From Leidyana gryllorum EB-2025a (Eukaryota > Protista > Apicomplexa), in contig JBLWGC010000006.1 in NCBI GenBank assembly GCA_048772705.1, positions 1 to 27,652 on the forward strand: a stretch of 27,652 nt of DNA, written 5' to 3'. Numbering within the stretch: the first letter of the stretch is position 1; every line of letters starts with the position of its first letter. Shown here piece after piece: positions 446 to 25,594 of this stretch. The translations under genes were made by a program, and so were the position numbers. The notes under the pieces were generated by a model. The model searched no databases, was not told where the DNA came from, and saw nothing but the letters and a program-made list of their open reading frames with translations.

Positions 446-620
446 GGCAAACTAGTCTGGCAAAGCCAGTCCAGCTTACCAGCATCTCTGTGTCTCCAAT
501 GCCGGCCGGCACCGGCACCGAGACGGGGAGAGACGAACGACACACACTTACGAAACATGGAGTTACGTAGCAGATCACTTACCAATCTTGATGCCGATGA
601 GAACAGACCGCCAGGTTATA
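446..620 (+). repeat. Element A 5' LTR (5'-truncated), contains gag ATG at 557
   Basis: Shares gtctggca(a)agccagtccagcttaccagc and the terminus ccgccaggttata with 5570-5796, and is followed by C plus the PBS. Confidence 0.85.
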
Positions 621-621
621 C

Positions 622-632
622 TGGTAGCAGTG
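622..632 (+). promoter_or_regulatory. Primer-binding site TGGTAGCAGTG (probably initiator tRNA-Met)
   Basis: Lies 1 nt after the LTR end. The identical 11-mer follows the LTRs of B, B' and F. It is complementary to a tRNA 3' end ...CACUGCUACCA. Confidence 0.85.
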
Positions 633-1480
633 CGTCAGACAAGGACGGATCACCCAAGGCCATAGAAGACCAGAAAGAACCTTCGACAACCAGCGAGCCC
701 AACTTCACCAAGCACAAGCAGGTTGACAACGTGACTTACGCCAAGGGGTCAGAGCACAGCGGCATTGACCAGGTATCACGTATTATGACCTGGATACGGA
801 CAGCCATCCAGGTGGCAGGGCCCTACGAGGGCAGAACCGAGCCCAGACTCCACCTGGACACGCTTGAAAACTGTTTCCGGAACTCACTCCTACCCGAGCA
901 GCACTGGCCAACAGTGGCCTGTGGCACGTACGAGGCGAGGCGTCCGCCTGGGCCAACGCGGTTCGTCAGGACATTCGCAGGATGACGTGGCACAGCTTCA
1001 GGGAACTGGTCATCGGCGAATTCGAAACCGACAAACGCGGCTCTCTCGCCAAACTGGCTACCCTCGCCCCCCAGAACGGACGCATCAGAGCCTTCGCCAT
1101 GGCATTTCGTCAGCATCGGCGGGGTATCACAGCAATCCCAGAGCCAGATCTGATCGAACTGTACCTCAGCAAACTGCCACGAATGGAGCAAATGGCAATC
1201 CGCGGCAGGGCCCCCACCACGCTGGCGGAAGCAGTGTCACTTACCTTGACAATGTGCCCGAGGGATCAGGAGGTTGGACGAGCTATGGTCGTGGAGAAAC
1301 GGGGAGTGGGGCCGAAGAATCCGTATAGTCGGGAGCATTGCGAGCAAAACCGCTTATGCTACATATGCGGCAAGGCGGACCACATGACGAGGCAGTGTCC
1401 AGAACGTCGAAAACGAAACGAGCCGAAGCCACAGCGCACAGTATACAACGCCATGGAGGGTAACCAACCGGGATTATCAG

Positions 1481-1667
1481 CGCGCGTACGGTTGTTCGTT
1501 TGCCGGTTGTCGGGTGCTTCAGATCCCAGCTCACTGAGGCAGTCCAACCTATTCTGTGCGGGTTGTCGTCAAGTCGTAATGCTGTGAAACAGCTGGGTTC
1601 CCCCCGGTGCTTTCGGTGGGCCGGGGGTGCGGTCAAAAATCCTCCTTCTCGGAATCCGTGCTATTCT
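1481..1667 (-). other. 187-bp inversion covering the gag end, frameshift signal and start of pol
   Basis: Flanked by TATCAG (1475-1480) and CTGATA (1668-1673). Flipping it back restores in-frame ...NQPGLS-ENSTDSEKEDF* and ...TTVRA-LIDS. Confidence 0.92.
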
Positions 1668-4028
1668 CTGATAGACTCGCCGCCGAACTCAATATACTCG
1701 ACACGTCCAAGCGGGACAGAATAGGGCTCTCGGCACGATTAGCAACTCTGCAGTGGATCGAAGGCATGGGCAGTGTCGCCTGCGAAGGCGAAACCCAAGC
1801 AATAATAGCCACGCCACACCATGAATATGGACCCATCAACTTCGCAATAGCGAAGATCAACGGCTATGACGCCATCCCGGTGATCCATGAGGCCAACCTG
1901 CTACTGGGGAGGGACGGGAAAGGACACATCGTGGTGGCCGAGCGTACCACTCTCCGATGTGAGCAAACAGTATTCACGATGCCGGTGCCCACAACCACAG
2001 CACAGGAAGGGGAACGAATCACGAGCGAATTCGCCGACTTGCTACAGGAAGACTTACCATACCCACCAGATAGAGGATTTTTCAATTTTCGAATCCAACT
2101 GACACCAGACGCTCAACCATTCAACGGAAGGCCATACGGAGGTACAGAAGAGAATCAACGGGAACTTCGCAGGCAAGTAATGGAACTACTCGCACAGGGC
2201 AAAGTGACACGTTCGAGATCGGAGTGGTCCGCCCCATGTTTCCTCGTCGAGAAGAAGGACACGACCATTCCTCAGACGGTCGTGAACTACAAAGCCCTCA
2301 ATGACAACACAGTGTCATACACCTACCCAACGATGACAACAGAGGAGAACCTATCCAAGCTCAGAGGAGCACGGGTCTTCTCAAAACTCGACCTGAAATC
2401 CGGCTTCCACCAAGTACGCATCGAGGAAGAATCACAGCCACTTACCGCGTTCATTACCCCCTTTGGGAAGTTTCAATACACCGTGATGCCCTTCGGCCTG
2501 AAAAATGCGCCATGCTCGTTCATTGCTCTGATGACTCACGTCCTGGACGGCATGATTGGGAAATTCGTTGTGGCTTACGTAGACGACGTGCTGGTGTACA
2601 GCACCACAGCGGAAGAGCATTACGGACACCTCAAGGCAGTTTTTGAGCGACTCAGAACCCATCAATTATTCTTGAATCCAAAGAAGTCTCAATTCTTTCT
2701 ACAGGAGGTTCATTTTACGGGACACCATGTCACCACCAATGGGATTCAGCCAGATCAGTCCAGAGCTCTTTTCTTCCGCCACCACCCACCCCCAGAGACC
2801 GTCCAAGTACTGCGAGCCATCATCGGTTCCATGACGTACTACGCCCGATTCATTCCCCTGTTCGCCGCACTCACCCGCCCCTTCCACAAACAGATAAGCA
2901 ATGCGAGACGCGCATCCGAGAAGGTGGAATGGAACGAAGAGCTGGTGACTGAGTGGAGAACGCTCACCGAAGCATTTGCAGACAACAGCAAACTTGGACA
3001 CATGGATAGGTCTCTACCTCTCTTGATCACAACGGACGCGTCGAACGAAGCAATCGGAGCCACGCTGGAGCAAGAGCAAGACGGCCAGAGGTTGCCGCTG
3101 GAGTTCATGAGTACTGCACTGACACCCGCACAACGCAAATGGCCAGTCGATGAGCGCGAATTGTATGCCATCGAGATGGCATTGGAGCGGTGGCAACACT
3201 TTCTGATGGAGAAGCCATTTCGAGTCCTTACCGATCATAAACCACTGGCTACCCTGGTGAAGGCGAAGAACGTATCGGACAGGGTAGTACGGACGCTAAT
3301 CAAGATATCACAATACCCGTGTGAGATAGACTATATCAAAGGGAAAGACAATTACCCAGCAGACCTGTTGAGCCGACCAACCCGAACCCAGTGCATGGCG
3401 GCGACAGCAGCCCATCAGGAAGAAGAGTTCCTCCTGGCACTCAAGCGACTTAACGCCACCATAGAGCTACAGCATAACCTTTACCGCCACGAAGGCTTGG
3501 TTTACGACCAGGAAGGAAGAGTTGAGGTTCCCATCAAACTCAGCCATCAGAATGAAAATACTTGAAGAGGCACATACATCACCTTCGGATAGAACACTGC
3601 GCAGAATCGCGGCACTCTTCAGCTGGGAGGGATTAGCACAGGACGTGAGAGAGTTCTGCAACAAATGCGACTCATGTCAAAAGACCAAAGCAACGAACCA
3701 CCGACCGCTGGGCCTCCTTTCACCGCTCCCCCCCCTACCGGACTTGGAAAGAGGTGAGCATAGATCTACTATGCCTACCAAAAGATAGGGAGACCGGAGA
3801 GGACTGTGTACTCACCATGATAGATCGACTCACCAGAAAGATCATACTCGCACCAGAAGGCACCGCGAAACTCTTGTTTGACTATTTGATACGACCGCAC
3901 GGCTGCCCCGAAAGCATCGTCGCCGACTGCGACTCCAGGTGGTTGTCAGAGGCCTGGGCTGAAATCCTCAAACTCACAAATACCCGTCTGCGCACCAGCT
4001 CGGCATTTCATCCGCAAACCAACGGGAT

Positions 4029-4631
4029 CGTTGTAGTTCGTGTTTGCCTGATGGTCAACTTCCTATCGGGTTGCCAAATTCGACTTGGTGAAATTTCCAA
4101 TCGAATTAACATCCATCTGGATACTTCCCTACATATTTGGCACTTATATAGGGGCATGTATAAGATGGTGAAAAGGCATTATTAACGAACGTAGAGCAAC
4201 TACTACTAAAGCGTAAAGGCTGATGCACCCTAGTGGTCTGAACTCTCTGTGACAGTGTAACTGTGCAGACACTCGTATGAATGATCAGAGTGTGGTGTCG
4301 GGGAGAACTACCGTGTGTGTCCAGCGCGAGGCTCCGCAAGAGTGCGAGCGACTGGCACATGGGTAGAGTGAGAGAGACACCAGAGTGAGAGACACACGCA
4401 AGCAAAGTTGACTAAGTCAGAGTTGGACTAGGCAAGAGGCGGCCTAAGATAACTTTTGCACTTGGTACAACAAGTCGTAGTTCTTGTTTTGCGCCGTCGT
4501 GTGCGACATATTCGTGGTAGACTTGTCGGCAAAAATACTAAATTAGTTCCTAAGTCTGACTTGTGGTCGAAAGTATGCAGAGATGAGAACTGGGCCTCGT
4601 TCCCCTTGAGTAGCGACTTGGGGTTACAACA
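4029..4631. mobile_element. Solo LTR, 603 bp, of an unrelated family, inserted in A integrase
   Basis: Termini (C/T)GTTGTA...TACAACA and TSD GGGAT (4024-4028 and 4632-4636). Removing it restores HPQTNGMAERAH. Orientation is not determined. Confidence 0.85.
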
Positions 4632-5141
4632 GGGATGGCAGAGAGGGCACACCGCACCGTCATCCAGATCCTAAGAAACATATGCAACGAGATAGGCGAC
4701 GACTGGAGGCACCTCATATCCACGGTAGAAATGGCGTTCAACGCCACCTTCAACGAATCCATAGGGATGTCACCACACGAAGCGGAAACAGGCAGAGCCT
4801 TTCGAGGACCCTTGGAGGCGACTATCCCAACGGCCCCCACCAAAGTGGACCGATCCAACTGTACTCGGAGCGAATCAGCGAGGTTCTCGATCGAATAAAC
4901 CCCGCTCAACAAAAACAGAAACGGAACGCAGACCGCCACAGACAGGATGAATCTTTTGAGGTTGACGACTGGGTGCTACTCTCCACCAGCAGCTTGAAAG
5001 GACTGAGACGTACGAAGCTCTCCCCCTCACGCATAGCCCTTCCGCATAACCCAAGTGATCCCAGGAAATGTGTACGAGCTCGACCTACCGACTGGGCTGC
5101 GCATCTACAACCGTTTCCACGTCTCACGACTCACCAGGTAC

Positions 5142-5297
5142 TGTAATTGGGCTGGGCACTAGATTCTCTGGCTGGGACTAAGGTACGACTTCGTAGATGC
5201 ATGTATATTCGTTTTTGTCGTTCCGGGTTTTTTGACCTAACTAAAAAGTGTGTGTTCTCTGTGTCTCCGTCTCGCCGGCCGGCCGGCACACCTTACA
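5142..5297 (-). mobile_element. Solo LTR, 156 bp, inserted in A between integrase and chromodomain
   Basis: TGTAA...TTACA termini and TSD GGTAC (5137-5141 and 5298-5302). The minus strand from 5202 encodes MHLRSRTLVPARESSAQPNY. Confidence 0.92.
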
Positions 5298-5569
5298 GGT
5301 ACAAAGGAGACCCACCGGTAGAGACCACCCCCGTCTATCTCATGGACCGAGTGATCGGAGAGAGGGTCACCGCAAGAGGAATACACTGGTTGGTCAAATG
5401 GCAAGGCTACGATGAGCCTCCTGGGAGCCTATCGGGACGCTACGCGAAGGCGACGCCTTGGACCTGGTGTTGGCTTACCGGAACGAGTTCAACCGCAGAC
5501 CGACCACACGAGTTCCCTATACGCCCGCCCAGCTGAGAGGCGAGGACCTCTTAACCAGCCCCGGAGGAG

Positions 5570-5796
5570 TGTAGCGGCTAGCCGCCACCCCTGTACATGC
5601 GTGACCCCTTTTTAATTGCATATCACTGTCTGGCAAGCCAGTCCAGCTTACCAGCGTCTCTGTGTCTCGGAGGCCAGCCGGCACCGGCACGGAGACACAG
5701 AGACACGCACGAACGAACACACGCAATAAGACATGGAGCTACGCAACCACAGACTTACCGATTCCGTAGAGGATCTTACCTTACCGCCAGGTTATA
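5570..5796 (+). repeat. Element A 3' LTR (227 bp)
   Basis: TGTAG start after ggaggag and end ccgccaggttata like the 5' LTR. ATG 5733 encodes MELRNHRLTDSVEDLTLPPGY. Confidence 0.88.
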
Positions 5797-5804
5797 TGCA
5801 CTTC

Positions 5805-6197
5805 TGTAAGCAACACATGTGTTCCCTTTTTAATGTTCATGCGACCGGCACTACCCGGGAATACAAACACGACACACACTAGATCTAGATCCGAACTTAC
5901 CACTACCAGAAGACCATGACCAGACGAGCTAGCAGACCCAGCATCCTACCTAAGGCACTTTCCCTTAAGGCTAAGAAGGCCACCAAGACTGGGGTGGACG
6001 AACCCCCGACTTACTCTGGTAGCAGTGACTACAACCTGGAAGACGGAATTGCCACGGTAGATCACGCCACCTATGCACCGACATCGGTGGTGAGGGACAT
6101 CAAGCTGGTTACCCAGCTCACCAGCTCCTTCAATGGCACCCAAGACCCCAGATGCCACCTAGACAACCTAGAGGCGGCATTTGATACACTCATGATC
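5805..6197 (+). mobile_element. B': inverted copy of the element B 5' end (LTR 5805-6015, PBS 6017-6027, first ~94 gag codons)
   Basis: Near-identical to the reverse complement of 10221-10622 except for a 9-bp deletion and a few substitutions. Confidence 0.93.
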
Positions 6198-9100
6198 ATG
6201 GGCTCCCATGTGGCTTCCTCTTTCGGATACCCAATCCACTTCACTAGGAACCTCAGAGTTCCTTGGCTGTTGCTCTGTGCCAGGATCTTCTCCATTTGAA
6301 ACACCTCTCCACTGTCTTGTGTGGGGTCTCCTTCGAATCTCTTGAGTCTGGAGACCTGGAAGTTGCGCAACCCCTGCCATGCTCGGGGCATATCCAGTTC
6401 GTAAACGTCTGTCTCTAGACATCTCGTGACCCTCATCGGTCCCATGTATGCTTTGCTCAGCTTATGGCGCGGGCCTCCTTTGAGTCCCCTGGTCTTCAGC
6501 AGCACCATGTCTCCCTCCTGGAAGCTCTCCTCGGCTCGTCTGCGGTCATATGTTTTCTTCTGTTGGCTTTGCGCGGCTTTGATCCGATCCTGTATGGTGG
6601 ATATCCTTTCCGAGTGTATGGAGAACTGTGCTGTCGGTCCCGTTTCAATTCCTAAGGTGAGGGGGATTCTTGGGATGTATCCTCTTTCGGCCTCGAACGG
6701 GGAGCTTCCCGTTGAGGCATTTGCCATGGAGTTGTATGCGAACACGATGGCGGCTAATCGCTCGGTCCACTTGGGGCCCACGTCCTCGCAGACGCAGCGC
6801 AACATCTGTATGATGCTCCTGTGTCCTCGTTCCACTAATCCATTGGATTGTGGGTGGGCTGCTGTGCTTGGTTTCAGGGTTATTCCGGCTCTTCGTGCCA
6901 TCTCCGTCCATAAATCACTCAGCCATCTCGAGTCTCTGTCACAAACAATTGTGGTTGGAAATCCATGCTCTCAGACCACTCGGTTCATGAGAATGTGACC
7001 ACAGTCCTCGGCCGTTGCGGTAAGGAAACAGGGTTCGAGGAGTAATCTGCGTGTAAGTCTGTCTATAATGCTCATGACGCAGTCGGGTGTTCCCTCCTGT
7101 TCGGCTGGTAATTCCAATAGGTCGATAAATAACTCTTGCCATGGAAGCTCTGGTGGAGGAATTGGGTTCAGTAGGCCCAGTGGTTTCTTGGTGCTTGATT
7201 TGGCCCTCTGGCACATGGGGCATTCCTTGCAGTACCTGCGTACGTCCTCCGTGACTCCTGACCAGTTAAAATGGCCTCTGACTTTCAATAGCGTTCGGTC
7301 GTGAGCGAGATGTCGCGCTAGTGTAGAGTCGTGTGACTCTCGGATGACCATCAGTCTGAGGTCATTCTCGCCTGGCACGTATAGCCTCCCAAATTCGTCG
7401 TATATCCAATCCCCTTCTCGTTCGAATCCTTCCGGGGGGTGTTCGGTTCGGGCTGTTGCCTCTCTCAGCAGCTTGGCGAAATCTGTTTCGGCTCTAAATG
7501 TCACCAGGACTTCAGCCCTGGCACGACTCAGTAGACATTTTTCTCTCCCGGAATGTGGTCGATTGTGGCTGGGTACTGTGAGATCTTAATAAGCCAGCGA
7601 ATGACTTTGGGGCTTAGAGCCGTGCTGGTCTTCTGCAGTACCACCAGCGGCTTGTGGTCGGTGTGAATGAAGAAATCACGGCTCAGAAGGTAGTGTTTCC
7701 AGCGTTTTAGGGCCGATAGGATTGCCCATAACTCCCTCTCGTGAACAGCCCAGTTGGCCTGAGTGGTGGTCAGGTGTGTGCTAACATGTTCAATGATCCG
7801 TCGGGACTTTCCGTCTTGGCTCCATTGCTCCAGAGTTCCACCTGCAGCTACGTTGCTGGCATCGGTTATCACATGAAAGGGTAGAGTGTCGTCCACCACT
7901 CGAAGGGTCAGATCCGAGCCGAACGCGTCGGTGAGCGTCGTCCATTCTTTCTTAGTTTCGTCCGTCCACAAAATTTTGTCCTTCGGATTTTGGTACTGGT
8001 TAATGAGCGTGTGGAAAGGACTGGTGAGCTCGGCGAATCTAGGTATGTATTTAGCGTAATATGTCATCCCCCCAATAGCTCTTCGTAGATCTTTCATCGT
8101 GAATGGTGGTTCTAGCAGACTGAAGGCGTTCTGTCGGTATTGGTTCGGTCGCACTCCTCGGTGGTCGAGGTGTTGGCCAATGAAGTCGACTTCAGTAAGG
8201 AAGAAACTTGACTTCTTCGGGTGTACCTTCAGTTCATGTTCGGTGAGTCTTTGCAGGATTGGGTGGAGGTCTGACCGGTGAGTCTGAAGCGAAGGGCTGT
8301 AGACTAGTATGTCATCAACGTAAGCAATTGCGCATTTCCCCAGCCATGGTTTCAGATGTCTTGGATGAACGCCACGAAGGCTGGTGGTGCGTTCTTCAGT
8401 CCGAATGGCAGGACTCGCCAGTCGAACTTACCCACTGGTGATGAGAAGGCCGTGAGATGGCGACACTCTTCCTTGAGCAGGATCTGGTGCTATCCCGACT
8501 GGAGATCCAGCTTTGAGAAGACGCGAGCCTTGCGTAGCTCTGGTGCCACCAGGTCTGAGCGCGGTATTGGGTACGCATAGGTTTCTGTTGCATCATTGAG
8601 TTTCTTGTAGTTAATTGCAGTCCGGCTGTTCCGTAACCCGGCCTACGTGCGTACCACTGCGTAAGCTGCGTCCCATCTTAACCGTGTCTTATCTCCAGTT
8701 GGTTGTTCGTTAGTTTGTCTGTCTATTACGTGTGTCCGAAAAACCCTTGTAAGAACCCCTGTAGTGTATAGCCTGAGTAACCTTGCCCTAAGGGCTATAT
8801 TAATGACTAGGCGTGGTAGGGGGGTGTCCTACTTCGGCACTAGGAAGCAAGGAGCTCCCCATTCCGACTTGGATCGTTGTATCTTGCCCTGTTCAAGTAG
8901 CTCCTGTAGTTGTCGATCTATTTCCTGTCTGTTCTGTTCGGAGCATCCGTAGGCTCTGTCCGCGCTAGGAGTGTGCCCTGGTCGAAGTTTGATGTCGAAA
9001 TCGTGGAAGCCTCTCGAGGGTGGCACTTCCGTATTGGGTTTGAACAAGCCACCAAAGTCGGAGAGTATCCACTCCTCTTCAGGGGGAGTCTTCAGTGTCA

Positions 9101-10502: not shown

Positions 10503-10622
10503 GGTCTTCTGGTAGTGGTAAGTTCGGATCTAGATCTAGTGTGTGTCGTGTTTGTATTCCCGGTGTCTCCGGGTAGTGCCGGTCGCATGAGCATTAAAAA
10601 GGGAACACATGTGTTGCTTACA
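10403..10622 (-). repeat. Element B 5' LTR (220 bp) containing gag ATG at 10502
   Basis: TGTAAG...CTTACA followed by C and PBS TGGTAGCAGTG (10401-10391). Confidence 0.92.
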
Positions 10623-13708: not shown

Positions 13709-13710
13709 AT

Positions 13711-16700
13711 ATGGCCCCACCACCGACACAGGTAGCGGTGGGGCAGACAACAAAGGAAGTGTTCATCATAGGCAACAGGGGTAGGGCGGCGGTGACATGG
13801 ACGCTCGGTGGACCCCACCAGGACGCCCGCGCCTTGTGTCTGGTGGATAGCGGAGCGCAAGTGAATCTAATGAACCCAAACATAGCACGCAGGTTGCAAT
13901 TGGAAATCAAAGAGGCAAACCGGTGTGAAGTGAAAGGCATTGGAGGCGGCCAGTCTACACTGGGTACGGTCAAAGCAGGCGTGCGCATACAGGCAGGGGC
14001 GAAGTTCAATTTGGAGTTTCAAGTCACTCCGATCGACGTATATGACGCCATCATTGGGACCGAAGCCATTGTGGAGCTGCAATTAGCCATTGGATGCAAT
14101 CAGAGAGGGGAACTCACGGTACTGGCGCGAGTGTCGTTGGAAGCAGCAGCGGTGAACGAGAAGGAAACACAAATCATGATCGCGACGGCACAGACGATGG
14201 ACATACCAGTCCAAGAGGAGTGGATAATGTCGGAGTTCGGGGATCTGTTCAAAACCGGTGGAGGAATCCCGCCAACCAGGGGCTTCTATGATTTCGAAAT
14301 TCAACTCCACCCTGATGCACAGGCGCATTTTGAACGACCCTACACGGGTTCCGAATCCACGAGAGCAGAGATCACACGACAGCTTACCGAATTAGAGCAG
14401 CAGGGACGGATAAGGCCCTCTAAATCGGAGTGGGGAGCGCCGTGTTTCCTTGTTCCTAAACGAGACAACCCAATTCCGCGCCTTGTAATCAACTACAAGG
14501 GGTTGAATAGCCAAACAGTTACCTACGCTTACCCGATTCCCAGACCGGACCTGACATCACCAGCCCTCAGGGCAGCTCGATGCTTCACGAAGCTGGACCT
14601 CCAGTCCGGCTATCACCAAATCCGAATACAAGAACCCTACAAACACCTGACCGCTTTCTCGACCCCAGTGGGCCAATATGAGTGGAATGTCTTACCCTTC
14701 GGATTGAAGAACGCCCCACCGGCGTTTGTTGCTTTCATGGAATTTGTCCTCAGACCCTGGATAGGAAAATGCGTCACAGCATATGTTGACGACGTACTGG
14801 TTTACAGTCCAACGTGGGAACAACACCGAAAGGATCTCAGGGGCATACTGCAGGCATTTACGGAACATCAATTGTACATTCATCCACGGAAGTCCAAATT
14901 TTTCACGGACCAGGTGACCTTCATCGGACAGCATATTGATGCGAACGGCATCCGGCCAGAGCCAGAGAGACAGAATGCGTTTGCAGAGCTACCACCACCG
15001 ACCACGCTGGGTGATCTCCGAAGAATTATCGGTGGGATGACCTACTATGCCCGGTACATCCCGAATTTCGCTGGACTCTCAGCCCCTTTCCACGACATTA
15101 TCAAAGGCCTGCAGAAGAAGAGCGACAGAATCGAATGGAGTGAGCGACGAGTGGAGCAATGGCGACAACTGAAACAAGCCTTCGGCCGAAATCTCACATT
15201 GGGAGTGGTAGACGAGAGTCTGGATTTTCACGTGACCACCGATGCGAGTGATTTCGCGGTAGGAGGGACACTGGAACAGTGGACGGCGGACGGGAGGAAC
15301 ATCATTGAACACTTTAGCACCAAACTGAACTCCACCCAGCGAAACTGGGCGGTGCATGAGCGCGAGCTGTGGGCGATTATCGCAGCCCTGAAAAGGTGGA
15401 AACACTACCTGCTGAGCAAGGACTTCTTCATACACACAGATCATAAGCCTTTGGCGGTTCTAACCAAGGGAAGCGGTGCACTGAGCCCCAAAGTGATCAG
15501 ATGGTTGGTCAAGATCTCCCAGTACCCTGGGAAGATTGACTACATTCCCGGGGAATTGAACCTACTGGCCGACATCCTGAGCAGAGCTGGCACGAAGGAG
15601 GACCCAAGGAGAGTCCTTATGACCACTCAACAGGCCGAAACAGATTTCGCGGTACAGTTCAAAGAAGCCCTAGCAAGGGTTACCAACATTCCCGATGGAT
15701 TCGAGAGGTCAGGCGAATGGATCGCTGACGAGTACGGCAGGCTGTTCGTCCCTCAGGAATTACGCCGACTAGTAATCGGCGAGAACCACGACTCAATGCT
15801 AGCCGGACATCTGGCACAGGACAGAACACTACTGAAGATTAGAGGGCATTTTAACTGGCCCGGCATCACCGAAGATGTGCGCAAGTACTGCCAAGAATGC
15901 ATCCAGTGCCAGAGAACGAAAGGCCTGACAAAGAAACCTCTAGGGCTTCTCAATCCAATCAACCCGCCAGCCCTACCGTGGGAGGAGCTGTCTATCGACC
16001 TAGTAAGTATGCCACCGGATAATACCACAGGCCAAGACTGCATATTTACAATGATTGACCGACTCACCCGAAGAATCTTACTGGAACCGTGTAAGCATAC
16101 GGCGGGAGCGGAGGAGTGCGCCAAGATGCTCGTACATCGAGTGGTACGAGAACATGCGTTCCCGAAGGCCATCATCAGCGACCGGGATGCCAGGTGGCTC
16201 AGCGATCTGTGGGAAGACATGCTGAGAACAGCAGGAACGAAACTCCAGGCAAGTACACGGGGACACCCACAGACAAATGGGTTACTCGAGAGAGCCCACC
16301 GGACGATCATACAAGTACTCAGAGCGGTATGCGAGGACGAACTGAGCGCGGACTGGGTGTCAAAACTCCCAGCGATAGAGTTCGCGTACAACACACTGCC
16401 GAACAGCTCAACTGGCATCAGCCCATTCGAGGCTGAACGAGGATATATCCCCCGCGTTCCACTGACGCTCACACTGGACACTGGGAGGGTACAGTGCGGA
16501 TTGCATTCGGAGAACCTCGTCATCATACAGGACCGAATCAAGGAAGCCCAGACTCGGCAAAAGAAGGAACATGACAAACATCGGGACCCATCCAGCTTTC
16601 GAGAGGACGACTGGGTCCTCCTGCGAACTCAAGGGCTAACAGCGGCTCCCAAAGGAAAGCTACGCAGAACGTACATGGGACCCTTTAGGGTGGTCCGCTC

Positions 16701-16959
16701 CCTCCCGGGGGATGTCTTCCAACTAGAAATGCCAACCGAATGGCGCGGGATCACCAAGTTTCACTGCTCGAGACTCAAAGAATTCCATGGAGCTCACCCT
16801 GATCGACAGACGGGAGAGTTGTACCAGCTGGAGAGCGTACTGGCACAGCGACTCACCGACCGCGGCCTGAGTTTTCTAGTCAAGTGGGAAGGGTACCCAC
16901 GAGATCAGGCAACCTGGGAACCCCTAGCTGCCCTCCTGGATGCGGATGCAGTGACTTGA
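13711..16959 (+). CDS. pol: Element D Pol polyprotein (PR, RT, RNase H, integrase, chromodomain)
   Basis: LVDSGA, YVDD, TTDAS, HDSMLAGH/CQECIQC, SIDLV...SDRD...ERAH, MGPF, YQLESV...VKWEGY...TWEP. A frameshift near 16950 cuts the last ~33 aa (natural stop probably 17057). Normally entered by -1 frameshift at 13699-13705. Confidence 0.95.
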   Translation: MAPPPTQVAVGQTTKEVFIIGNRGRAAVTWTLGGPHQDARALCLVDSGAQVNLMNPNIARRLQLEIKEANRCEVKGIGGGQSTLGTVKAGVRIQAGAKFNLEFQVTPIDVYDAIIGTEAIVELQLAIGCNQRGELTVLARVSLEAAAVNEKETQIMIATAQTMDIPVQEEWIMSEFGDLFKTGGGIPPTRGFYDFEIQLHPDAQAHFERPYTGSESTRAEITRQLTELEQQGRIRPSKSEWGAPCFLVPKRDNPIPRLVINYKGLNSQTVTYAYPIPRPDLTSPALRAARCFTKLDLQSGYHQIRIQEPYKHLTAFSTPVGQYEWNVLPFGLKNAPPAFVAFMEFVLRPWIGKCVTAYVDDVLVYSPTWEQHRKDLRGILQAFTEHQLYIHPRKSKFFTDQVTFIGQHIDANGIRPEPERQNAFAELPPPTTLGDLRRIIGGMTYYARYIPNFAGLSAPFHDIIKGLQKKSDRIEWSERRVEQWRQLKQAFGRNLTLGVVDESLDFHVTTDASDFAVGGTLEQWTADGRNIIEHFSTKLNSTQRNWAVHERELWAIIAALKRWKHYLLSKDFFIHTDHKPLAVLTKGSGALSPKVIRWLVKISQYPGKIDYIPGELNLLADILSRAGTKEDPRRVLMTTQQAETDFAVQFKEALARVTNIPDGFERSGEWIADEYGRLFVPQELRRLVIGENHDSMLAGHLAQDRTLLKIRGHFNWPGITEDVRKYCQECIQCQRTKGLTKKPLGLLNPINPPALPWEELSIDLVSMPPDNTTGQDCIFTMIDRLTRRILLEPCKHTAGAEECAKMLVHRVVREHAFPKAIISDRDARWLSDLWEDMLRTAGTKLQASTRGHPQTNGLLERAHRTIIQVLRAVCEDELSADWVSKLPAIEFAYNTLPNSSTGISPFEAERGYIPRVPLTLTLDTGRVQCGLHSENLVIIQDRIKEAQTRQKKEHDKHRDPSSFREDDWVLLRTQGLTAAPKGKLRRTYMGPFRVVRSLPGDVFQLEMPTEWRGITKFHCSRLKEFHGAHPDRQTGELYQLESVLAQRLTDRGLSFLVKWEGYPRDQATWEPLAALLDADAVT

Positions 16960-17084
16960 TCCTGGACTACAGGAGAAAGTGGAACGAAAACAGACGAGGC
17001 GGCGTACCGTTTACCGAAGATGAACTCAATGGCCTAGATCTAGTGCCCATCAGCTAGGAAACAAAACAATGAAAGGGGGAGCAG

Positions 17085-17332
17085 TGTAAGGAGTTACACT
17101 AGTCTACTCTTTCAGAAGCTCGCAACGGAACAGTTAGCCTACTAAATGTTTAGTTTTTAGTTGCATGAAAGCCGGTGTCTCCGAGGAGACACCGGCAATA
17201 CACACACGGAACACTCGACTAGAATGACTGTTACAACGCGATCTAAAAAGCATTCTATCCTACCCAAGAAGCTAACCAGAAAGACCAGAACTATTGCCCA
17301 ACCAGATCTAGACCCAGAACCGGACACTTACA
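17085..17332 (+). repeat. Element D 3' LTR (248 bp)
   Basis: TGTAAG...CTTACA with a hairpin at 17171-17196. ATG 17224 encodes MTVTTRSKKHSILPKKLTRKTRTIAQPDLDPEPDTY, homologous to the B gag N-terminus (SILPK.L). Confidence 0.92.
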
Positions 17333-17587
17333 CACAGGGGCTTCGGGCTCGGAGGGCTTTGGAGGGGGACTTACCTGTGTCAGAGAAGGGGGCGAACTCT
17401 CAGCGGGCTGGGTAGAGGGGGTAGCAGGGCTGTTGGGGGGCGACTCGGGAGGGGTGGCCTCGAAGGTCTCTTCTTCGAGCTCAGTGTTGCTCGAGGCTTC
17501 CATGTTGAGCGCCGTTGGTACGCTGGGAAGGGCCAGAGCCTCAGCTTGAGCTTCAGTGGGTGCGTCACAAAGGGCTTTCTGTGCCAT
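17333..17587 (-). pseudogene. 5' part of a Pro/Ser/Glu-rich gene of unknown function, interrupted by element D
   Basis: ATG 17587 in ACCATGG context after an AT-rich intergenic stretch. The frame MAQKALCDAPT...PSEPEAPV is open up to the D LTR boundary. Confidence 0.5.
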
Positions 17588-17890
17588 GGTCAATCTTAAG
17601 CGATACAAAAAACTGGTGGCAACTTTGTATTTACGAAAAAATTGGTAACGAGATAAGGGTGACGACATTGGTAGAATCGCGCAAAATTTGCCTAAAAATT
17701 TCGATGAGACTTGAACGGGTTAAGGATGACGACAAGAAAAAACACGCAAAATATTTGCACTGGCATTGGCAACTGTATGAGCCATTGAAGGTACATAAGG
17801 TAAGAGACTCACCTATTACATGTCTTGTTCTCGTACGTGATCACTTCTTGTATCTTATGCTACAACGCTGTCGTCTTACCATCTTTTGTT

Positions 17891-18435
17891 TTAGATGATG
17901 TTGCCCATCTCAACTTGGAACCCTTTCCCGCAAATCTGACACTTCATGTATCCCCGATGTACATGAGGAGGGGTAGGGGGAGCTAGGGGAGGGGTAGGGG
18001 CTGCCAGCCTTGGCAATGGCTTCAGGTCCACCGTCGAGGCCAGTGAGTCTCTGCGAGTGCTCAATAACTCTGTTTGCTCATCTTGAACAACCGTTGAGAG
18101 ACACCCAATGACCTCAGTAGACGAGACCGAAGCTGAGGGAGACTGAGAATCACTCAGTGGCATGATAACTGGGGGGCCACTGGATGCTGGTTGGGGGAGG
18201 GAGCGAATGGGGGAGGGGTTAGCTGGCTGGGGAAAAAACCGAACAACCGGGGGTTCAGGCTCCATTGGCTGGAGCTCTACTCGCAATTGGGGTCGCGGGG
18301 CATCCCAGTTCCTCGCAAAGTGCCGAAGCTCTTCCTCGGCTATGTGAGATGTGTGGGGATGAGTTGCGGGAACTTACTTGGTGTGGGAACGTGCCAGACC
18401 AGTCTGAGTGGCACGAGGTCTTGTCTTGGGAACAT
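17891..18435 (-). CDS. Predicted 168-aa Pro-rich protein with C-terminal CxxC; two exons (18435-18378 and 18339-17891)
   Basis: A 38-nt GTAAGT...CATAG intron (18377-18340) joins MFPRQDLVPLRLVWHVPTP in frame to TEEELRHFARNW...KCQICGKGFQVEMGNII*. TATAA upstream at 18614-18610. Confidence 0.55.
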
Positions 18436-18897
18436 CTGGGGGGGAAGAAAGTGAGCGCGAGCGAGAAGAGGGCTTTTTCGATCTGAGAACAAAAATAACA
18501 GTCCAAGTCCCACGTCTCGCACACCAAATCTTGGGGAAACTGGCTCGTTTGGGCTGCTATCTGTTGCTTGCGAGCCGCACGAGAGCTAAATTAAGGAGTC
18601 TGACGACCCTTATATCTCGATGGGAGGCTAGTTTGCTGTAGCGAACGAGCCAATTGAAGTTTGGGAAGTCTCATTTTTGCAAAAATCAGGCCTTCTCGTG
18701 TCTCCGAGAGCTCGAGAGAGTCGCCTATCTCTTATTCTGGCGGTGAGATTTCGCCTAGAATGTGGCTGCTAACTAATCAGGCCACTACTATTCCTAAGGT
18801 AAGCGAGAGAGCTAGTCTAGAGCTTCTAATCAAATTCCTATTTCACTAAAAGTCGTTTCTGGTACCCCCTAAGAACCCCCAAAAAACCTACGGTAAT

Positions 18898-19112
18898 TGT
18901 AGAGGTCCCGTGCCCTCTCCTCTACGTCGGAGGTACAGTCAGGATCAGTGGCTGGGGTTTCCCGAGCCCTCTTGCCTCTAGTTGTCACCATTGTTCTAGT
19001 TTGCTCTTAGTACCTTCGTACTTGTCCGTCTGTCTGTCTGTCTCTGTTTGTTACCCCCCGAGTGTCTATCTGAAAAACCTAAAATGTGTGTAAGTTTGGT
19101 GTAACTCCTACA
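18898..19112 (-). repeat. Element E 3' LTR (215 bp)
   Basis: TGTAG...CTACA directly after the PPT. ATG 18991 encodes MVTTRGKRARETPATDPDCTSDVEERARDLY. Confidence 0.85.
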
Positions 19113-19126
19113 CTCCTCCCCCTCTG

Positions 19127-20366
19127 CTATAAGAGATCGTCTCCCCTGAGTTCTTCGGTTGTGTAGGGTGGGGCATTGGGTCGCTCTGTGTTCCAGCGTA
19201 GCCTGTAAGCGAGTATGAGGTCGTGAGCTTGCCCATCGCGGATCGTTTCTATCCCCTCCCATGTGTTGTCCGCCTCAGCGTATCCAACCCATTTGATGAG
19301 CCACTCTTTGTTGCCCGTTTGTCTGTTGACCCTTTCTCCTTTCACTTCCTCCATCATATAGATCGCTTCTGGTAGGGTGTCGTCCGCTCCTATAAAGGGT
19401 TTGATTCGGGAGATGTGGAATTTATTGAAGCATCTCCAGTTGTTGGGTAGTTCCAGTTCTACCACGTCTCCTTTGGTAATGGCCTTTATGCGGAATGGTC
19501 CGCAGTAGCGTTTGGTGAGTTTGTCCTGAGGTAGGCCCCGAAGGCCTTTGGTCTGTAATAGCACTAGTGTCCCTGTCTGGAGGTCGATTTCCTTGTGATG
19601 TTGGTCGTATTGTTTCTTTTGTTGATTCCCAGCCGCTCTGATGCGATCCTGAAGTTGTGTGAGTCGCTCAGCGTAGGTCCATAAGCTCTTGTCGCTTGTG
19701 GGTATATCTAGGGTTATCGGGTGTCTGGGGATGTACCCCAGTTCGGCTTCGAACGGTGCCATTCCAGTACTCGCGTTTGGTGTCATGTTAAAGGCTATTT
19801 CCGTGGCAGCCAGATATTGGTGCCACTCGTCCGTAAACTCTCCGCAAACTGTCCTAAGCATCTGAATGGTGGTGCGGTGTGACCGTTCGACCGCTCCGTT
19901 GGTTTGTGGATGTTGGGCCGTACTCAATGATAGCTTGGTCCCGCTCAGTTTGAAGAGTTCCGTCCATAGTGCTGATAACCATCTGGGGTCTCTGTCGCCC
20001 ACTATCCTGTTGGGGAATCCTTTCTCTCGTATGATTCGGTTGAAGATGATTGCGGCACACTCTTCGGCATTGGTCGTGTGTTTGCATGGTTCCAGGATCA
20101 ACCGCTTAGTGAGGCGGTCTATTGCCACAAAGAGTGAGTCATAACCGGTCCGCTTATCCTTGGGTAGCGACAGTAGGTCGATTGATATGGCCTCCCACGG
20201 GGTCGATGGGGGTTCAACTGGGTTGAGAAGTCCCAGTGGTAGTTGGCACCGGTCTTTCGCCGTTTGGCACGTCAGACATTCCCTGCAGAACTTACCTACG
20301 TCGTGTGCCAAACCTGGCCAGGTGAAATGTGCAGCGATCCGTCCTTGGGTTCTCGTGTACCCTAAG
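19127..20366 (-). pseudogene. pol: Element E pol 3' part (integrase core plus chromodomain)
   Basis: Open frame with CRECLTC, SIDLL, GDRD, HPQTNGAVERSH, YCGPF and a chromodomain. Confidence 0.93.
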
Positions 20367-20743
20367 TGTAACACTATGTTACCCGAACCCCAAGCCCCTC
20401 TACTGGACAGACCGACACAACTCAGTCCGGATGAAGGGACGGTCCTCGGAGGCCGCCTGCTACGTCAAAGGCGGATTGTATGACGACATTTGGCCGCAGC
20501 CAATATGTCCACGTGTCTGTGTCTCCGTCTCGTGCCGGCCAGCCGGCCGGCACACATACGGAGACACGGACCAGACAGACAGAGATAGATCAGGATAGAT
20601 CACGTGACTTACCTTTTTGTGTGCCCGCCGATTGACCGTGAACCTACCGATTGAACTTACCAATACCACAATGGACGCACCCATGACGTTACGCAATGGA
20701 CGGGAAGTAACCCCCGCCACCGTGGACCCGCCGCCGGGTTACA
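20367..20743 (+). repeat. Element F 5' LTR (377 bp)
   Basis: TGTAAC...GTTACA, a direct repeat of 25211-25589. Confidence 0.97.
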
Positions 20744-21795
20744 CTGGTAGCAGTGCGTCGTTGAGGTCTGGACCCGGCGCGGTCGGCCTCAACGACGCAC
20801 CCGCGGACGACGGACCCCCAGCGGAAGGAACGTACGACCGCTGCGCCGAATTACAACAGGTCGTAAATGCGGCCCAAAACCTCATACGCCAGATGGAGGC
20901 TCTTACCCAGTGCCCCATCAATGCGGCGGCCCCCACGCCGAAGGAAGGAACGGAACCGCTAGGAAGGGCAGAAGAGTCGCACTCCGCCCCGAGCCGACTA
21001 GCTCAGGCGGCTGTGAAGAAACAACCGGACTTCACCGGCGAAGATGCCGTTTCCGCTAGATCCTGGCTTGAAGCATGCGAAGCGAAGTTCGCCGCATTCG
21101 GCATCAGCAACCATACCGACCGCATACGCGCCCTCGGAACGATACTTGGCGGAAGCGCTGCAGAATGGTACGCGGACACCGTTGAGGAAGGACTAATGAC
21201 CACCTGGGAGACTTACAAGAAGCGTTTCCTGGCGGAATTCGAAACCCGAAGCGTCGCGGAAGACGATCTGACAGCTTGGGCCGATCTCCGCCGCTCGGGA
21301 ACGATGAGCCAATACATAGCACAAACTCGCACGCTCAAGCGTCGCTGCGGGAAAGACGTCACGGAACGGGGTGCCACGGCCTTCTTCTTCCGAGGACTCC
21401 GCCCCGAAGACCGTATTGCCTTAGCCGCTCATGCCGGGAAACCCTTTGACGAGCTCTGCCGAGCAGCCATACTCTGTGCGACGATCGCGGACCATCAGGC
21501 GCCAGCCATTACCACGGGGAGTTGTGTGAACGCAATCTCCGCCATGAATCGGCCGGAAGCCTCAAGACCGAGGACGGTGGGCAAGCGCTGCCGGTTCTCT
21601 CACGACCAGTGCACCAGCGAAGGAAGGTGCTATAACTGTGGTGAGATGGGACACCGCAATGCCCAGTGCCCCCAGCCGAGGGAACACAGACCTCGAACCC
21701 AACGACCTCGCACATTCGCCACCAACGTCCTGGAGGAACCGGATTTTCTCGACGGCCTGAACACGGAGGAGCTAGTGTCTCAGGCGGCGCAGTAG
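20671..21795 (+). CDS. gag: Element F Gag (374 aa from ATG 20671)
   Basis: PDFTGE...SWL...LGGSAAEWY...TWETYKKRFLAEF retrotransposon-Gag signature and CYNCGEMGHRNAQC knuckle. Confidence 0.94.
   Translation: MDAPMTLRNGREVTPATVDPPPGYTGSSASLRSGPGAVGLNDAPADDGPPAEGTYDRCAELQQVVNAAQNLIRQMEALTQCPINAAAPTPKEGTEPLGRAEESHSAPSRLAQAAVKKQPDFTGEDAVSARSWLEACEAKFAAFGISNHTDRIRALGTILGGSAAEWYADTVEEGLMTTWETYKKRFLAEFETRSVAEDDLTAWADLRRSGTMSQYIAQTRTLKRRCGKDVTERGATAFFFRGLRPEDRIALAAHAGKPFDELCRAAILCATIADHQAPAITTGSCVNAISAMNRPEASRPRTVGKRCRFSHDQCTSEGRCYNCGEMGHRNAQCPQPREHRPRTQRPRTFATNVLEEPDFLDGLNTEELVSQAAQ
20745..20755 (+). promoter_or_regulatory. PBS TGGTAGCAGTG, inside the gag reading frame
   Basis: Lies 1 nt after the LTR end and is absent after the 3' LTR. 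Confidence 0.88.
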
Positions 21796-24700
21796 GACCG
21801 GAACCCACCTTGACAGTTCGATGGATTCTGCGCAACCCTCGCTCCGACCTTGAAGTACCCGCGACCGTCCTGCTGGACACAGGCAGTAACACGAACTGCG
21901 TGAGCGCCAGCATGGTACACCGACTCGGCTTACTTACACACCCGTGCGCTGAACGGATCAGCACGCTCGCACCGACCGACACGCCTTGCAAAGAAGAAAC
22001 GGAACTCACGTTGAAAAGACGAGCATCCCAGCAGATGCCAATTCGCTGCCTTGTTGTACCCGACCTGCCCTACGACTTGATTGCATCGACTTCGACCATT
22101 CTCGCGCTTCGACTCCTCCTAGGACGCAATGCCGAAGGGAAGTTAACTCTTTTGGAGGGAAGGAGCTTACCTTCAGATGACATAGACCCCATGTGGCTGA
22201 AAGAAGACCCAAATCGCCCATCAGGCGGCTGTAGAGTGATGACAGCGGAAGCGAAGGACATGCTGGATACACCAACCTCCGAAACTTGGGTATTAGACGA
22301 TTTTCCCTCCGTATTCCTCCAAAACTTACCCATGCCACCACACAGAGCGCGAGTAGACCACGCCATCTACCTACACGACCCTACAACCTTACCATTCGTA
22401 CGCGCGCCTTACAAGGTCCCCCAACGATTCCTGGAAGAAATGAGGAAACAGATCACGGAACTCAGAACGGAGGGAAAGATTAGACTCAGCCTCTCGACCT
22501 GGGCCTCCCCGTGCTTATTCGTACCGAAGAAAGACACCAGCGTCCCACGCCTGGTGTGCGATTATCGAAGACTAAACCAAGCGACAGTGCGCATAGCGTC
22601 TCCGATGCCTTCGCTGGAGGAAGCCCTGCAGGTGTTGGCCGGGGCAACCATTTTCTCCACCCTGGACCTGAAGAGTGGATACCACCAAATACGAATGGAC
22701 CCCGACAGTTGTGCACTCACCGCGTTCTCCACACCGTGCGCCTGTTCGAATGGACTGTGATGCCCAACGGTTTAATGAACGCGCCGGCCACCTTTATGCT
22801 GCTGATGCGATTAGTCTTCCACGACATGATAGGGATTTTCGTCTTCGTTTACCTCGATGACGTCTTGATATTCTCGAAATCCCGCGAACAACATCGATCA
22901 CACCTGAGACAAGTATTGAGGAGACTACAGGAACACCAGCTGATAGCTCACCGGCGCAAGTCGCATTTCTTCCGCACGGAAGTGGACTACATCGGTCACC
23001 GAATCTCGGCACGAGGTATAATTCCCCTGACGGACCGAGTAGCGGCACTGCGATCTCTCCAAACGCCCAAAACACTGAAGGAAGCTCAAAGCTTTTTGGG
23101 ATCCTTTAATTACTATCGGCGGTTTATACCGCATTTCTCCGACATTGCGAAGCCTATCTACGAAGGAACCCATGGGCTCAAATCACCCAACGCACCACTG
23201 CCAGACGATCCAGCCATTTCAGCAGCCGTAAGGACCCTTAAGGATTCACTATCTCATACCATCTGCCTTTCCTTCCCGCGACCACAATGCCAAGAATTGT
23301 GGGTCACAACAGATGCAAGTGCAATCGCGCTAGGAGCAGTCCTGGAGCAAGAAGAGGAAGGATCTAGGGCCCCAATCGAGTTCTTCTCAAGAACACTGAC
23401 AGATGTCGAAAGACGATACGCCACCCACGAAAGAGAACTCTTGAGTATCGTCATGGCGTGCAAGCACTGGAGGCATCTCTTACTGGGGAGGAAGGTCATC
23501 ATCCAGACGGACCACAAACCGCTGACGCACATACTCAACCAGTCGCGTCTGACGGACCGCCAGATGAGATGGATCACGGTCCTGTCAGAGTTCGACTTGG
23601 ACATCCGTTACATACCAGGGGCGAACAACCTAATCGCCGATTTACTTAGCCGTCCGAATCCGCGAACGATCGAGATAAAAGCAAATCGACTCTTGGAGAT
23701 GAAGACGGGAGTTCCCTCACAACCCATAGGAGAGGCGACGGTGCTCGCGACACAAGCCGAGCCAACAAATCTGGAAGACCGACTTCGCCAAGCATGGGCC
23801 GAGAGGCGAGCCTCAATTGAGGATGCACCGGACGTTGAATGGATCGAAGGCCTGCCTATAGAACCGGACGGCGTCATACGCGTGCCGCCGGACCCGGAGA
23901 TCATCCGACTCATCATAGGGTACAATCATGACACCAGATTCGCCGGCCACCTAGGACCTGACAAGACGGCCGCTCGCATACGGTCTCTATTCAACTGGCG
24001 AGGGCTTCAAGCGGACACGATCCAATACTGCCACCAATGCGACATTTGTCAACGAGCCAAGAAACGTAACCACCACCCAGCGGGGCTGTTGAACCCCATC
24101 AAGTGCCCGATGTTCCCATGGGAGGATGTGGGACTGGACTTCTTGGAGTTACCCACAGACCCCGAGACCTCCTACGACTACGTCATGGTGGTCGTCGACC
24201 GTCTCACACGACGAATTCGACTCACCGCTGGCAACAAAACAATCACTGCCGCCGACACCGCCACACTATTCATCGAAAACATTGTCAAGATACACGGAAT
24301 CCCTCGCCGAATCCTAAGTGACCGGGATCCTAGGTTCACGTCAGCGGTGTGGCAAGAAATGATGACACAACTAGGGGCACAAGTGACGCTGACCACCGCT
24401 TACCATCCACAAACGAACGGGCTGGTGGAGAGGGCCAACCGTTCTATACTACAAATACTACGCTGCACGCTGGAAGGAATCGGCCATCGGTGGAGCCACC
24501 TTCTCACCGCGATCGAAATAGCCTACAACACGGCGAGACAGAGCTCCACTCGTTGCTCTCCTTTCGAATTGGACACAGGAAGGACGAATTTGGGACCACC
24601 ACGCCAGATACTCCCCGCGCAACACAGCCTCCCGTTCCGAGTCTACACCCAGAAGCTCCAGGAAGCGTCGGACCGTCTCGCTGAGGCCAGTGCGGCGCAG

Positions 24701-25327
24701 AAGAGACAAGCGGATAAAGGCAGGATAATGTTGAAGTTTCAACCCGGGGATCAAGTGCTACTGTCAACTCGCAACCTTCACCATGTACCGCCTAGGAAAC
24801 TCAACCTACCGTATTACGGACCCCTGACGGTGGTCACGGCCCACCAAGGCGACACTTACACACTGAACTGCCCGGAAGGATGGCACATACATCCGAAGTT
24901 TCACGTCTCCCGATTGGAGAAGTACGTCCAGCCGACCCAACCCATGACGAGACGGGACGACACTCAAGTACAGCAACCCACCGAACCACCGCCGTTATAC
25001 ATGATGGAACAGATCATTGGAGAACGGGTGAACCGTAGTGGCGAACTGGAGTACAAGGTGAAATGGTCAGGCTTCTCGGACTCGGAATGCACCTGGGAAC
25101 CCGCGCAGCATGTGCTAGAAGGAGACGGCGCCGACTTGATCTCGCGATTCCGCCACGACTGGAATCGCCGACACCCAGAAGCCCCCTACAACGAAGCGGG
25201 TGGGGAGGGATGTAACACTATGTTACCCGAACCCCAAGCCCCTCTACTGGACAGACCGACACAACTCAGTCCGGATGAAGGGACGGTCCTCGGAGGCCGC
25301 CTGCTACGCCAAAGGCGGATTGTATGA
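21741..25327 (+). pseudogene. pol: Element F pol (-1 frame to gag; one 1-nt deletion near 22740); extends 117 nt into the 3' LTR
   Basis: LLDTGS, FSTLDLKSGYHQ, YLDD, TTDAS, HDTRFAGH/CHQCDIC, LDFL/SDRD/ERAN, YYGPL, YMMEQI...VKWSGF...TWEP. Confidence 0.95.
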
Positions 25328-25589
25328 CGACATTTGGCCGCAGCCAATATGTCCACGTGTCTGTGTCTCCGTCTCGTGCCGGCCCGCGGGCCGGCACACA
25401 TACGGAGACACGGACCAGACAGACACAGAGATAGATCAGGATAGATCACGTGACTTACCTTTTTGTGTGCCCGCCGATTGACCGTGAACCTACCGATTTA
25501 ACTTACCAATACCACAATGGACGCACCCATGACGTTACGCAGGGGACGGGAAGTAACCCCCGCCACCGTGGACCCGCCGCCGGGTTACA
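25211..25589 (+). repeat. Element F 3' LTR (379 bp)
   Basis: Follows the purine tract ggggaggga and is followed by TSD CTAAG. Confidence 0.97.
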
Positions 25590-25594
25590 CTAAG

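Follow-up and report, generated by a model that had tools for sequence, protein, structure and literature searches.

The window analysed here, a stretch of 27,652 nt (27.6 kb) from Leidyana gryllorum EB-2025a (assembly GCA_048772705.1, contig JBLWGC010000006.1, positions 1–27,652), is filled by long terminal repeat (LTR) retrotransposons nested in one another, with the exception of a short host-like stretch at 17333–18897. The Ty3/Gypsy chromoviruses of this window probably start their Gag protein inside the LTR: a frame opened by an ATG 20–36 codons (61–109 nt) before the LTR end would be read through the integrase attachment (att) end, a spacer base and the tRNA primer binding site (PBS) into the capsid and zinc-knuckle domains. 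We assign this reading a probability of roughly three in four. The LTR ATG emerges as the most likely start from the statistics of shuffled LTR ends, from its being the first ATG available, from the position of the next in-frame methionine in one element and from intervening out-of-frame ATGs, all of them properties of the DNA sequence.

A stop-free frame ends on the last base of the chromovirus LTRs

LTR borders were set from target-site duplications (TSDs), polypurine tracts and LTR pairs. The LTRs, lettered by element, and their open reading frames (ORFs) are as follows.

20367–20743, plus strand: 5′ LTR of F, 377 bp, ends TGTAAC...GTTACA, TSD CTAAG at 20362–20366 and 25590–25594; Gag ATGs at 20671 and 20683, frame ending on base 20743
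25211–25589, plus strand: 3′ LTR of F, 379 bp, 98% identical to the 5′ LTR; ORF 25517–25589
448–620, plus strand: 5′ LTR of A, left border undefined; ORF 557–620
5570–5796, plus strand: A-type 3′ LTR; ORF 5733–5796
5142–5297, minus strand: solo LTR C, 156 bp, TSD GGTAC; ORF 5202 down to 5142
8616–8799, minus strand: solo LTR D, 184 bp, TSD TTAAT, decayed ends TATAG...CTGCA; ORF 8676 down to 8616
12449–12805, minus strand: solo LTR G, 357 bp, TSD GGACG; in-frame ATGs at 12542 and 12509
10622 down to 10403, minus strand: 5′ LTR of B; gag ATG at 10502
5805–6015, plus strand: LTR copy of B, last base T; ORF from 5916 (5916–6015); spacer 6016, PBS 6017–6028
17085–17332, plus strand: 3′ LTR of E; ORF 17224–17332 (36 codons + 1)
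18898–19112, minus strand: 3′ LTR of J (H), with the purine tract GGGGGAGGAG before it; ORF 18991 down to 18898 (31 codons + 1)
13347–~13486, plus strand: truncated 3′ LTR of I, which keeps the palindrome (see below) and ATG-CAC-CTG-CGC (M-H-L-R) at 13475, followed by the E gag tail
4029–4631, strand not assigned: solo LTR X, non-conforming, 603 bp, ends TGTTG...CAACA, TSD GGGAT

All eleven chromovirus LTR copies, which represent about eight families, contain a frame of 3n+1 nt that opens with an ATG, has no stop and closes on the final base of the LTR. Nine of these frames had been listed in an earlier, sequence-only reading of the window; they translate as given there, and their lengths (64, 64, 61, 61, 100, 109, 61, 94 and 73 nt) are each 3n+1. 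Further copies of the frame lie in the 3′ LTR of F (25517–25589) and the plus-strand copy of B (5916–6015), and the truncated LTR of I (13347–~13486) retains its beginning. In the LTRs of G and F, another ATG occurs in the same frame farther 5′. The earlier reading had assigned the frame to every family and had let it end on a terminal TAC-A. The first statement holds for the eleven chromovirus copies but not for X, in which neither orientation has an ATG frame in the 3n+1 phase; the second holds for most LTRs, the exceptions being A, which ends in TAT-A, the plus-strand copy of B (TAC-T) and D (TGC-A).

As a chance test, the last 150 nt of the LTRs were shuffled with dinucleotides preserved and the terminal five bases kept, and ATG-started open frames of at least 20 codons were scored. 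Such a frame appeared in the 3n+1 phase in 2–14% of the shuffles per LTR; the product over the nine LTR types is ~7e-12, a figure that overstates the independence of families sharing descent. The real LTRs have the frame in 9/9 cases in the 3n+1 phase, compared with 0/9 and 1/9 in the other two phases. These numbers bear on the possibility that the frames arose by chance, given a strand poor in T and in stops and the common ancestry of the LTRs. The sense strand does show a strong positive AT skew, stops being rarer on it than in random DNA (for which the shuffles allow), and the region 1–447 is open for 22–45 codons in all three phases. Against chance stand the shuffle frequencies and the nearly empty alternative phases, the distances, which are all 3n+1, and the retention of the frame by families as far apart as 35% identity in pol. 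Nucleotide identity between the ORFs of different families is 32–65%, and this divergence is, as judged from the sequences, enough for an unselected frame to have decayed. We consider a chance origin very improbable.

The frame continues through the PBS into Gag

In A, both copies of B and F, the LTR is followed by a one-base spacer, C, and then by the PBS TGGTAGCAGTG(C/A), which together are read T-G-S-S. The start of this PBS presumably fits the 3′ end of the initiator tRNA, ...GCUACCA. TGG-TAG contains a stop in one frame, which leaves two by which the PBS can be crossed, and of these the same one serves in all families. The features of the continuing frame are given below.

20744–20756, plus strand: spacer and PBS of F, C followed by TGGTAGCAGTGC, read (T)-G-S-S-A
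20671–21795, plus strand: gag ORF of F, 374 codons, stop at 21793; next in-frame Met at codon 75
621–982, plus strand: spacer, PBS (622–633) and N-terminal part of gag of A, read in the frame of the LTR ATG over 142 codons before a frameshift
9915–10622, minus strand: LTR and gag ORF of B, spacer 10402, PBS 10401–10390; 196 codons from the ATG at 10502

The continuation of the frame as T-G-S-S into Gag, proposed in the earlier reading, was confirmed in F, in minus-strand B and, until its frameshift, in A. F Gag contains Ty3_capsid at aa 112–278 and a CCHC knuckle at aa 319–335, and minus-strand B contains Retrotrans_gag at aa 108–192. The proposal that the att end, the PBS and 20–36 Gag codons overlap in a fixed phase is likewise supported at the sequence level. 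As a sequence feature, gag beginning in the LTR is found in A, both copies of B and F, and the other chromovirus LTRs carry an ATG frame in the same phase.

The LTR ATG as the probable start of Gag

In every LTR, the ATG that opens the frame is the first one past the conserved palindrome. The eleven ATGs that occur further upstream in the LTRs are confined to the palindrome itself or the sequence 5′ of it, and C, D, G, H and I lack any. Past the PBS of B, no in-frame Met occurs before codon 93, which falls within the conserved capsid block: the capsid F-x-G motif of B (aa 71–73) and the helix that follows it align to F from aa 121 on (121–123) and to A from aa 89 on (89–91). Because the next in-frame Met lies inside this block, the Gag of B must, on this alignment, start in the LTR; a start at Met 93 would cut into a conserved domain. 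Between the PBS and the next in-frame Met there are also out-of-frame ATGs, one in F and three in B, which a ribosome scanning from a later point would meet on its way. The 46–55 codons of this interval are open in all three elements, for which the chance values are 0.34, 0.12 and 0.14 (jointly ~0.006). A purine occupies position −3 of the ATG in 7/9 families, which we judged uninformative on an A-rich strand.

A word-based search returned no close relatives of F Gag, and a HMMER search returned distant Gags only, which do not align to residues 1–44. Distant Gags begin MVSTRSG and MVTTRGD, resembling H and E, and the M-V-T-T-R-type motif looks like a genuine Gag N-terminus that here lies upstream of the PBS.

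The peptides encoded between the ATG and the LTR end fall into two classes. The short class, of 20–21 codons (A, C, D, G and F), starts M-x-L-R-S/N, with D reaching L-R-S after a short M-G-R-S lead; the cut LTR of I keeps the M-H-L-R start only. The long class, of 31–36 codons (B, E and H), starts M-(T)-V-T-T-R-S/G or M-T-R-R. The peptide often ends in P-P-x-Y (P-P-G-Y in A and F, P-P-T-Y in B), the final Tyr being dictated by the TACA end of the LTR. Residues are kept across codon-family switches: the Arg of T-T-R is CGA in E and AGA in H, and a Ser within S-I-L-P-K is AGC in B and TCT in E. Within M-x-L-R, the Leu codons are TTA, CTA and CTG and the Arg codons CGT, CGC and CGA.

Several observations weigh against a start in the LTR, the shared descent of the families and the T-poor strand mentioned above among them. 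Over the whole peptide, the ratio of nonsynonymous to synonymous differences (pN/pS) is near 1, at 0.35/0.35 for the 5′ versus the 3′ LTR of A and 0.44/0.60 (0.73) for F versus G, so that most of the peptide appears to be without detectable purifying selection. The sequence-only reading had named a dN/dS near 1 as a result that would count against it, and near 1 is where the ratio came out, on some 20 codons that give such a comparison almost no power. An in-frame Met precedes the capsid block in F (codon 75) and A (codon 77) and might be used as a start. The enrichment of the N-terminal motif in distant Gags is weak and post hoc (6/142 against a background of 1.6%, p = 0.024). The palindrome would hinder scanning if it lay in the 5′ untranslated region (UTR).

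Part of this evidence favours a reading in which the LTR frame is untranslated, the transcription start site (TSS) lying inside or after it and Gag being made from the first Met past the PBS; openness and phase would then be kept by constraints on the nucleic acid, for example the U5/PBS structure needed to anneal the primer, or the att site. The pN/pS values and the Mets at codons 75 and 77 agree with this, as does the placement of the ATG after the PBS in distant relatives. It fits poorly with B, whose next Met lies inside the capsid block, and with the out-of-frame ATGs that precede the next in-frame Met in F and B. Constraint on the nucleic acid explains neither the conserved ATG, nor openness in one phase, nor residues kept through codon-family switches, and R plus U5 would need to fit into <~60 nt in five families. 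We regard an untranslated LTR frame as unlikely.

A shade less probable again is the production of two isoforms, in which the LTR ATG would give a long Gag and either an internal Met or a TSS further downstream a shorter one, in the manner of the glyco-Gag of murine leukaemia virus (MLV) or p22 of Ty1. G and F have two in-frame LTR ATGs, and F and A have further in-frame Mets before the capsid. Ty1 is reported to make a truncated Gag from a subgenomic RNA (PMC4551931). Nothing in the sequence requires a second isoform, however, and B is without a usable downstream Met.

With the LTR ATG taken as the Gag start, constraint falls visibly, in the sequences compared, on the start codon, the openness, the phase, the length class and the first and last few residues; the middle of the peptide behaves as a free linker and is not conserved.

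How Gag would be read from the LTR

If Gag starts at the LTR ATG, transcription would begin upstream of it, probably in the ATG-free, CA-rich stretch after the palindrome; a TSS past the palindrome is likely because a hairpin in the 5′ UTR would hinder scanning. The LTR ATG would thus lie in R or U5 and present the first AUG to a scanning ribosome. The frame itself passes the terminal (T)TACA recognised by integrase, the single spacer base and the PBS, the last LTR bases reading as Tyr and the first base of Thr and the PBS as Gly-Ser-Ser, and then crosses a variable N-terminal stretch before the capsid and zinc-knuckle domains. Reverse transcription would rebuild both LTRs from one template, and for this reason 3′ and solo LTRs would carry the same ORF unused. 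The earlier suggestion that a solo LTR could equip the DNA beside it with a promoter, an ATG and a peptide found no support in the window, where the frames read out of 3′ and solo LTRs stop after 1–27 codons.

A much broader proposal can be made only tentatively, and we think it rather doubtful: that a whole chromovirus clade moved its Gag start into R/U5, so that the same 75–120 nt serve as leader, coding sequence, integrase end and primer site. The LTR peptide would then form a functional module: its start (M-x-L-R-S or M-V-T-T-R) would be basic, its middle an unconstrained linker, and its P-P-x-Y terminus might attract WW-domain ligases in the way of retroviral late domains. The ends of the peptide would co-evolve with the constraints of att and PBS, and solo LTRs would scatter first exons, ready for use, across the genome.

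Two further features recur in these LTRs. A GC-rich palindrome with arms GTGTCTCC...GGAGACAC is kept in six otherwise unalignable families (20509–20571, 12601–12655 on the minus strand, 5655–5704, 484–536, 13363–13410 and 17169–17198), at a distance of 23–104 nt 5′ of the Gag ATG. B has a weak form and C only half of it; D and H lack it. The predicted RNA fold of the palindrome has −24 to −45 kcal/mol (z −2.8 to −7.9), and the palindrome is a candidate promoter element, 3′-end structure or other element. A run of five T (CTTTTTG, GTTTTTAG, CTTTTTAA and similar) occurs in every LTR family on the otherwise T-poor strand, 24–119 nt before the ATG, upstream of the palindrome in some families and downstream in others (for example 20612–20616, 5243–5247 on the minus strand, 13422–13426, 17154–17158 and 5610–5614).

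The layout across pol lineages and outside relatives

Each of the six pol lineages of the window is linked to an LTR that has the frame. A FastTree tree built from 263 reverse transcriptase (RT)/RNase H columns of 94 database relatives and the window lineages places the latter in the groups (F,I), with support 97, and (A,J,(E,B)), with support 100. The two groups join each other and the outside contig P0197 at a weak support of 80, and P0151 at 91. Their pol identity to each other, ~35%, is no higher than that to outside chromoviruses. The best outside pol identity is 35% for E and 51% for F, the latter to locus L112, and the sources are environmental or read-archive assemblies. The contigs nearest in the tree, P0151 and P0197 (L048, L049), end inside gag.

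The contig of L112 (Logan ERR10900103) reaches 30 nt upstream of a PBS identical to that of the window elements, again preceded by a C spacer. The gag ORF of L112 keeps the frame across this PBS and stays open as far as the contig edge; the first Met of the ORF is found 40 codons beyond the PBS. The contig stops 27 nt into the 3′ LTR, the interior of the LTR being unassembled (sites 1–60 and 4520–4559). L112 is an F/I-like element, and public reads therefore include a related host or the same species.

Distant chromoviruses place the Gag ATG after the PBS. In locus L002, one of those whose Gag has an MVSTRSG- or MVTTRGD-type start, it lies ~50 nt past the apparent LTR end and a PBS-like site; in L004 the distance from such a site is ~100 nt. 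Searching metagenome contigs for the LTR-end/PBS string returned 43 loci, mostly unrelated genes; three chromovirus loci among them (L012, L040 and L023) served as negative controls, carrying the identical string TTACACTGGTAGCAGTG without an upstream ATG frame. Because these three have the string without the frame, the layout is a lineage trait and not a by-product of the att/PBS sequence. Two loci with 45% RT identity (L113 and L114) had no recognisable LTR or PBS. Exact-protein look-ups with E pol and F Gag returned no record, and neither DNA-pattern scans nor pol alignments of viral contigs turned up a useful relative.

The layout had been called clade-defining. This is plausible, and the six lineages and L112 fit it, but it is not shown: the support joining the two groups is 80, and the nearest outside contigs end inside gag.

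Comparison with known systems

As is probable for the window elements, Ty1 and Ty2 of Saccharomyces (Ty1/Copia, Pseudoviridae), of which Ty1 is the nearest working counterpart, begin Gag inside the 5′ LTR and have a PBS for initiator methionine tRNA (tRNA-iMet) within the GAG coding region. The PBS begins TGGTAGC, as expected for initiator tRNA. Ty1 differs in belonging to the other superfamily, with the opposite order of integrase and RT in pol and without a chromodomain; it has ~14 codons before the PBS, compared with 20–36 here, and the LTR-encoded peptides are unrelated. The Ty1 RNA has a 53-nt 5′ UTR and its PBS at nt 95–104, inside GAG (PMC5454406). In Tca5 of Candida albicans, a Ty5-like Copia element, a long ORF likewise reaches into the LTR and has two candidate ATGs there (PMC4139406). 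Tca5 is a single Copia-type family, in contrast to the set of divergent families seen here, and its true start was left open by its authors.

Ty3 of Saccharomyces and typical chromoviruses have the domain order, capsid fold family and CCHC knuckle of the window elements as well as their 5-bp TSD, and presumably share tRNA-iMet priming with them; chromoviruses also share the chromodomain integrase. Ty3, the type Gypsy element, has its 5′ PBS in the 5′ UTR (PMC11381356), unlike the PBS within the coding frame here. Literature searches of full texts, from which older papers in subscription journals fall outside coverage, returned no report of gag starting in the LTR of a Gypsy element or chromovirus. 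The glyco-Gag of MLV (gPr80) is an N-terminally extended Gag whose translation begins upstream of the usual start. It differs in using a CUG start downstream of the PBS and in being an extra isoform of a retrovirus.

As far as the sequences go, we conclude that a Ty1-like gag-in-LTR layout is real in a chromovirus clade. It is of a kind known from Ty1, not usual for Gypsy elements, and involves no new principle. If the LTR ATG is the start, the Ty1 solution would also have arisen, or been retained, in Ty3/Gypsy chromoviruses and stayed stable across ~35% pol identity, and the elements would offer a natural case in which the integrase end, tRNA primer pairing and protein coding share bases in a fixed phase. 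LTR annotation pipelines that seek gag only past the PBS will truncate Gag in such genomes, and gene finders may call short spurious ORFs at every solo LTR. The layout alone does not change the understanding of retrotransposition; its interest is for retroelement specialists and for annotation.

The retroelements of the window

Six internal regions were mapped by tblastn, with the two best-preserved pol genes as queries.

621–5569, plus strand: A internal region
10402 down to ~6197, minus strand: B internal region
10623–13346, plus strand: I internal region, 5′-truncated
~13487–17084, plus strand: E internal region, 5′-truncated
27652 down to 19113, minus strand: J internal region, split by F
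20367–25589, plus strand: element F, inserted within the J integrase

In Pfam, the pol proteins of E and F contain protease, RVT_1, RT_RNaseH, Integrase_H2C2 and rve in that order, together with an SH3-like domain and a C-terminal chromodomain (PF00385 Chromo, aa 832–881 of F pol and aa 1038–1077 of E pol), and F Gag contains Ty3_capsid and zf-CCHC. By this pol order, the Ty3-type capsid and the chromodomain, the elements are Ty3/Gypsy (Metaviridae) chromoviruses, and nothing in the window points to human or other animal DNA. The elements are ~5.2 kb in size, with short LTRs of 156–379 bp. F has the features of an LTR retrotransposon, namely an LTR pair 98% identical, TG...CA ends, a TSD, a PBS at 20745 and a purine tract before 25211. 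It is nearly intact, with a single frame shift in pol, in the RT region near 22743 (22740–22746); gag and pol overlap by ~130 nt, pol being in the −1 frame.

The two LTRs that flank A are not a pair: they are 86% identical over 78 nt only, their U3 regions are unrelated and their peptides differ at 11/21 residues. B is without a 3′ LTR; past the end of its pol (~6197) lies an inverted, 99%-identical copy of its own 5′ LTR and first ~60 gag codons (5805–6197 versus 10221–10622), which may stem from aberrant replication, from loss of the sequence between two inverted copies or from faulty assembly. At 13347–13710, the 3′ LTR of I, cut just past ATG-CAC-CTG-CGC, is fused to the zinc-knuckle end of E gag, and the join forms a single open frame (M-H-L-R plus the E gag tail) to a stop before E pol. 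The A/C-rich region 1–447, which ends in GGTTACA, was considered as a further LTR but left unassigned, as it has neither an in-phase ATG nor defined borders. X sits within the A integrase and has no internal partner in the window; we take its ends, TGTTG...CAACA, to be typical of Copia-type elements, and they suggest that X is one of these.

A search of the window with ARAGORN found no tRNA gene, and an Rfam scan gave no matches. The stretch 17333–18897 is the sole non-retroelement part of the window. It contains a minus-strand, ATG-started, exon-like ORF (from 17588) that runs up to a GTAAGT donor, and a C-x2-C motif is encoded among its other ORFs; the stretch probably represents a host gene, abutted in antisense by the end of the E LTR. 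All insertions whose target can be read (C, D, G, F, X and B) sit in the pol of another retroelement, which fits chromodomain-guided targeting of repeat chromatin or merely a region made of repeats only.

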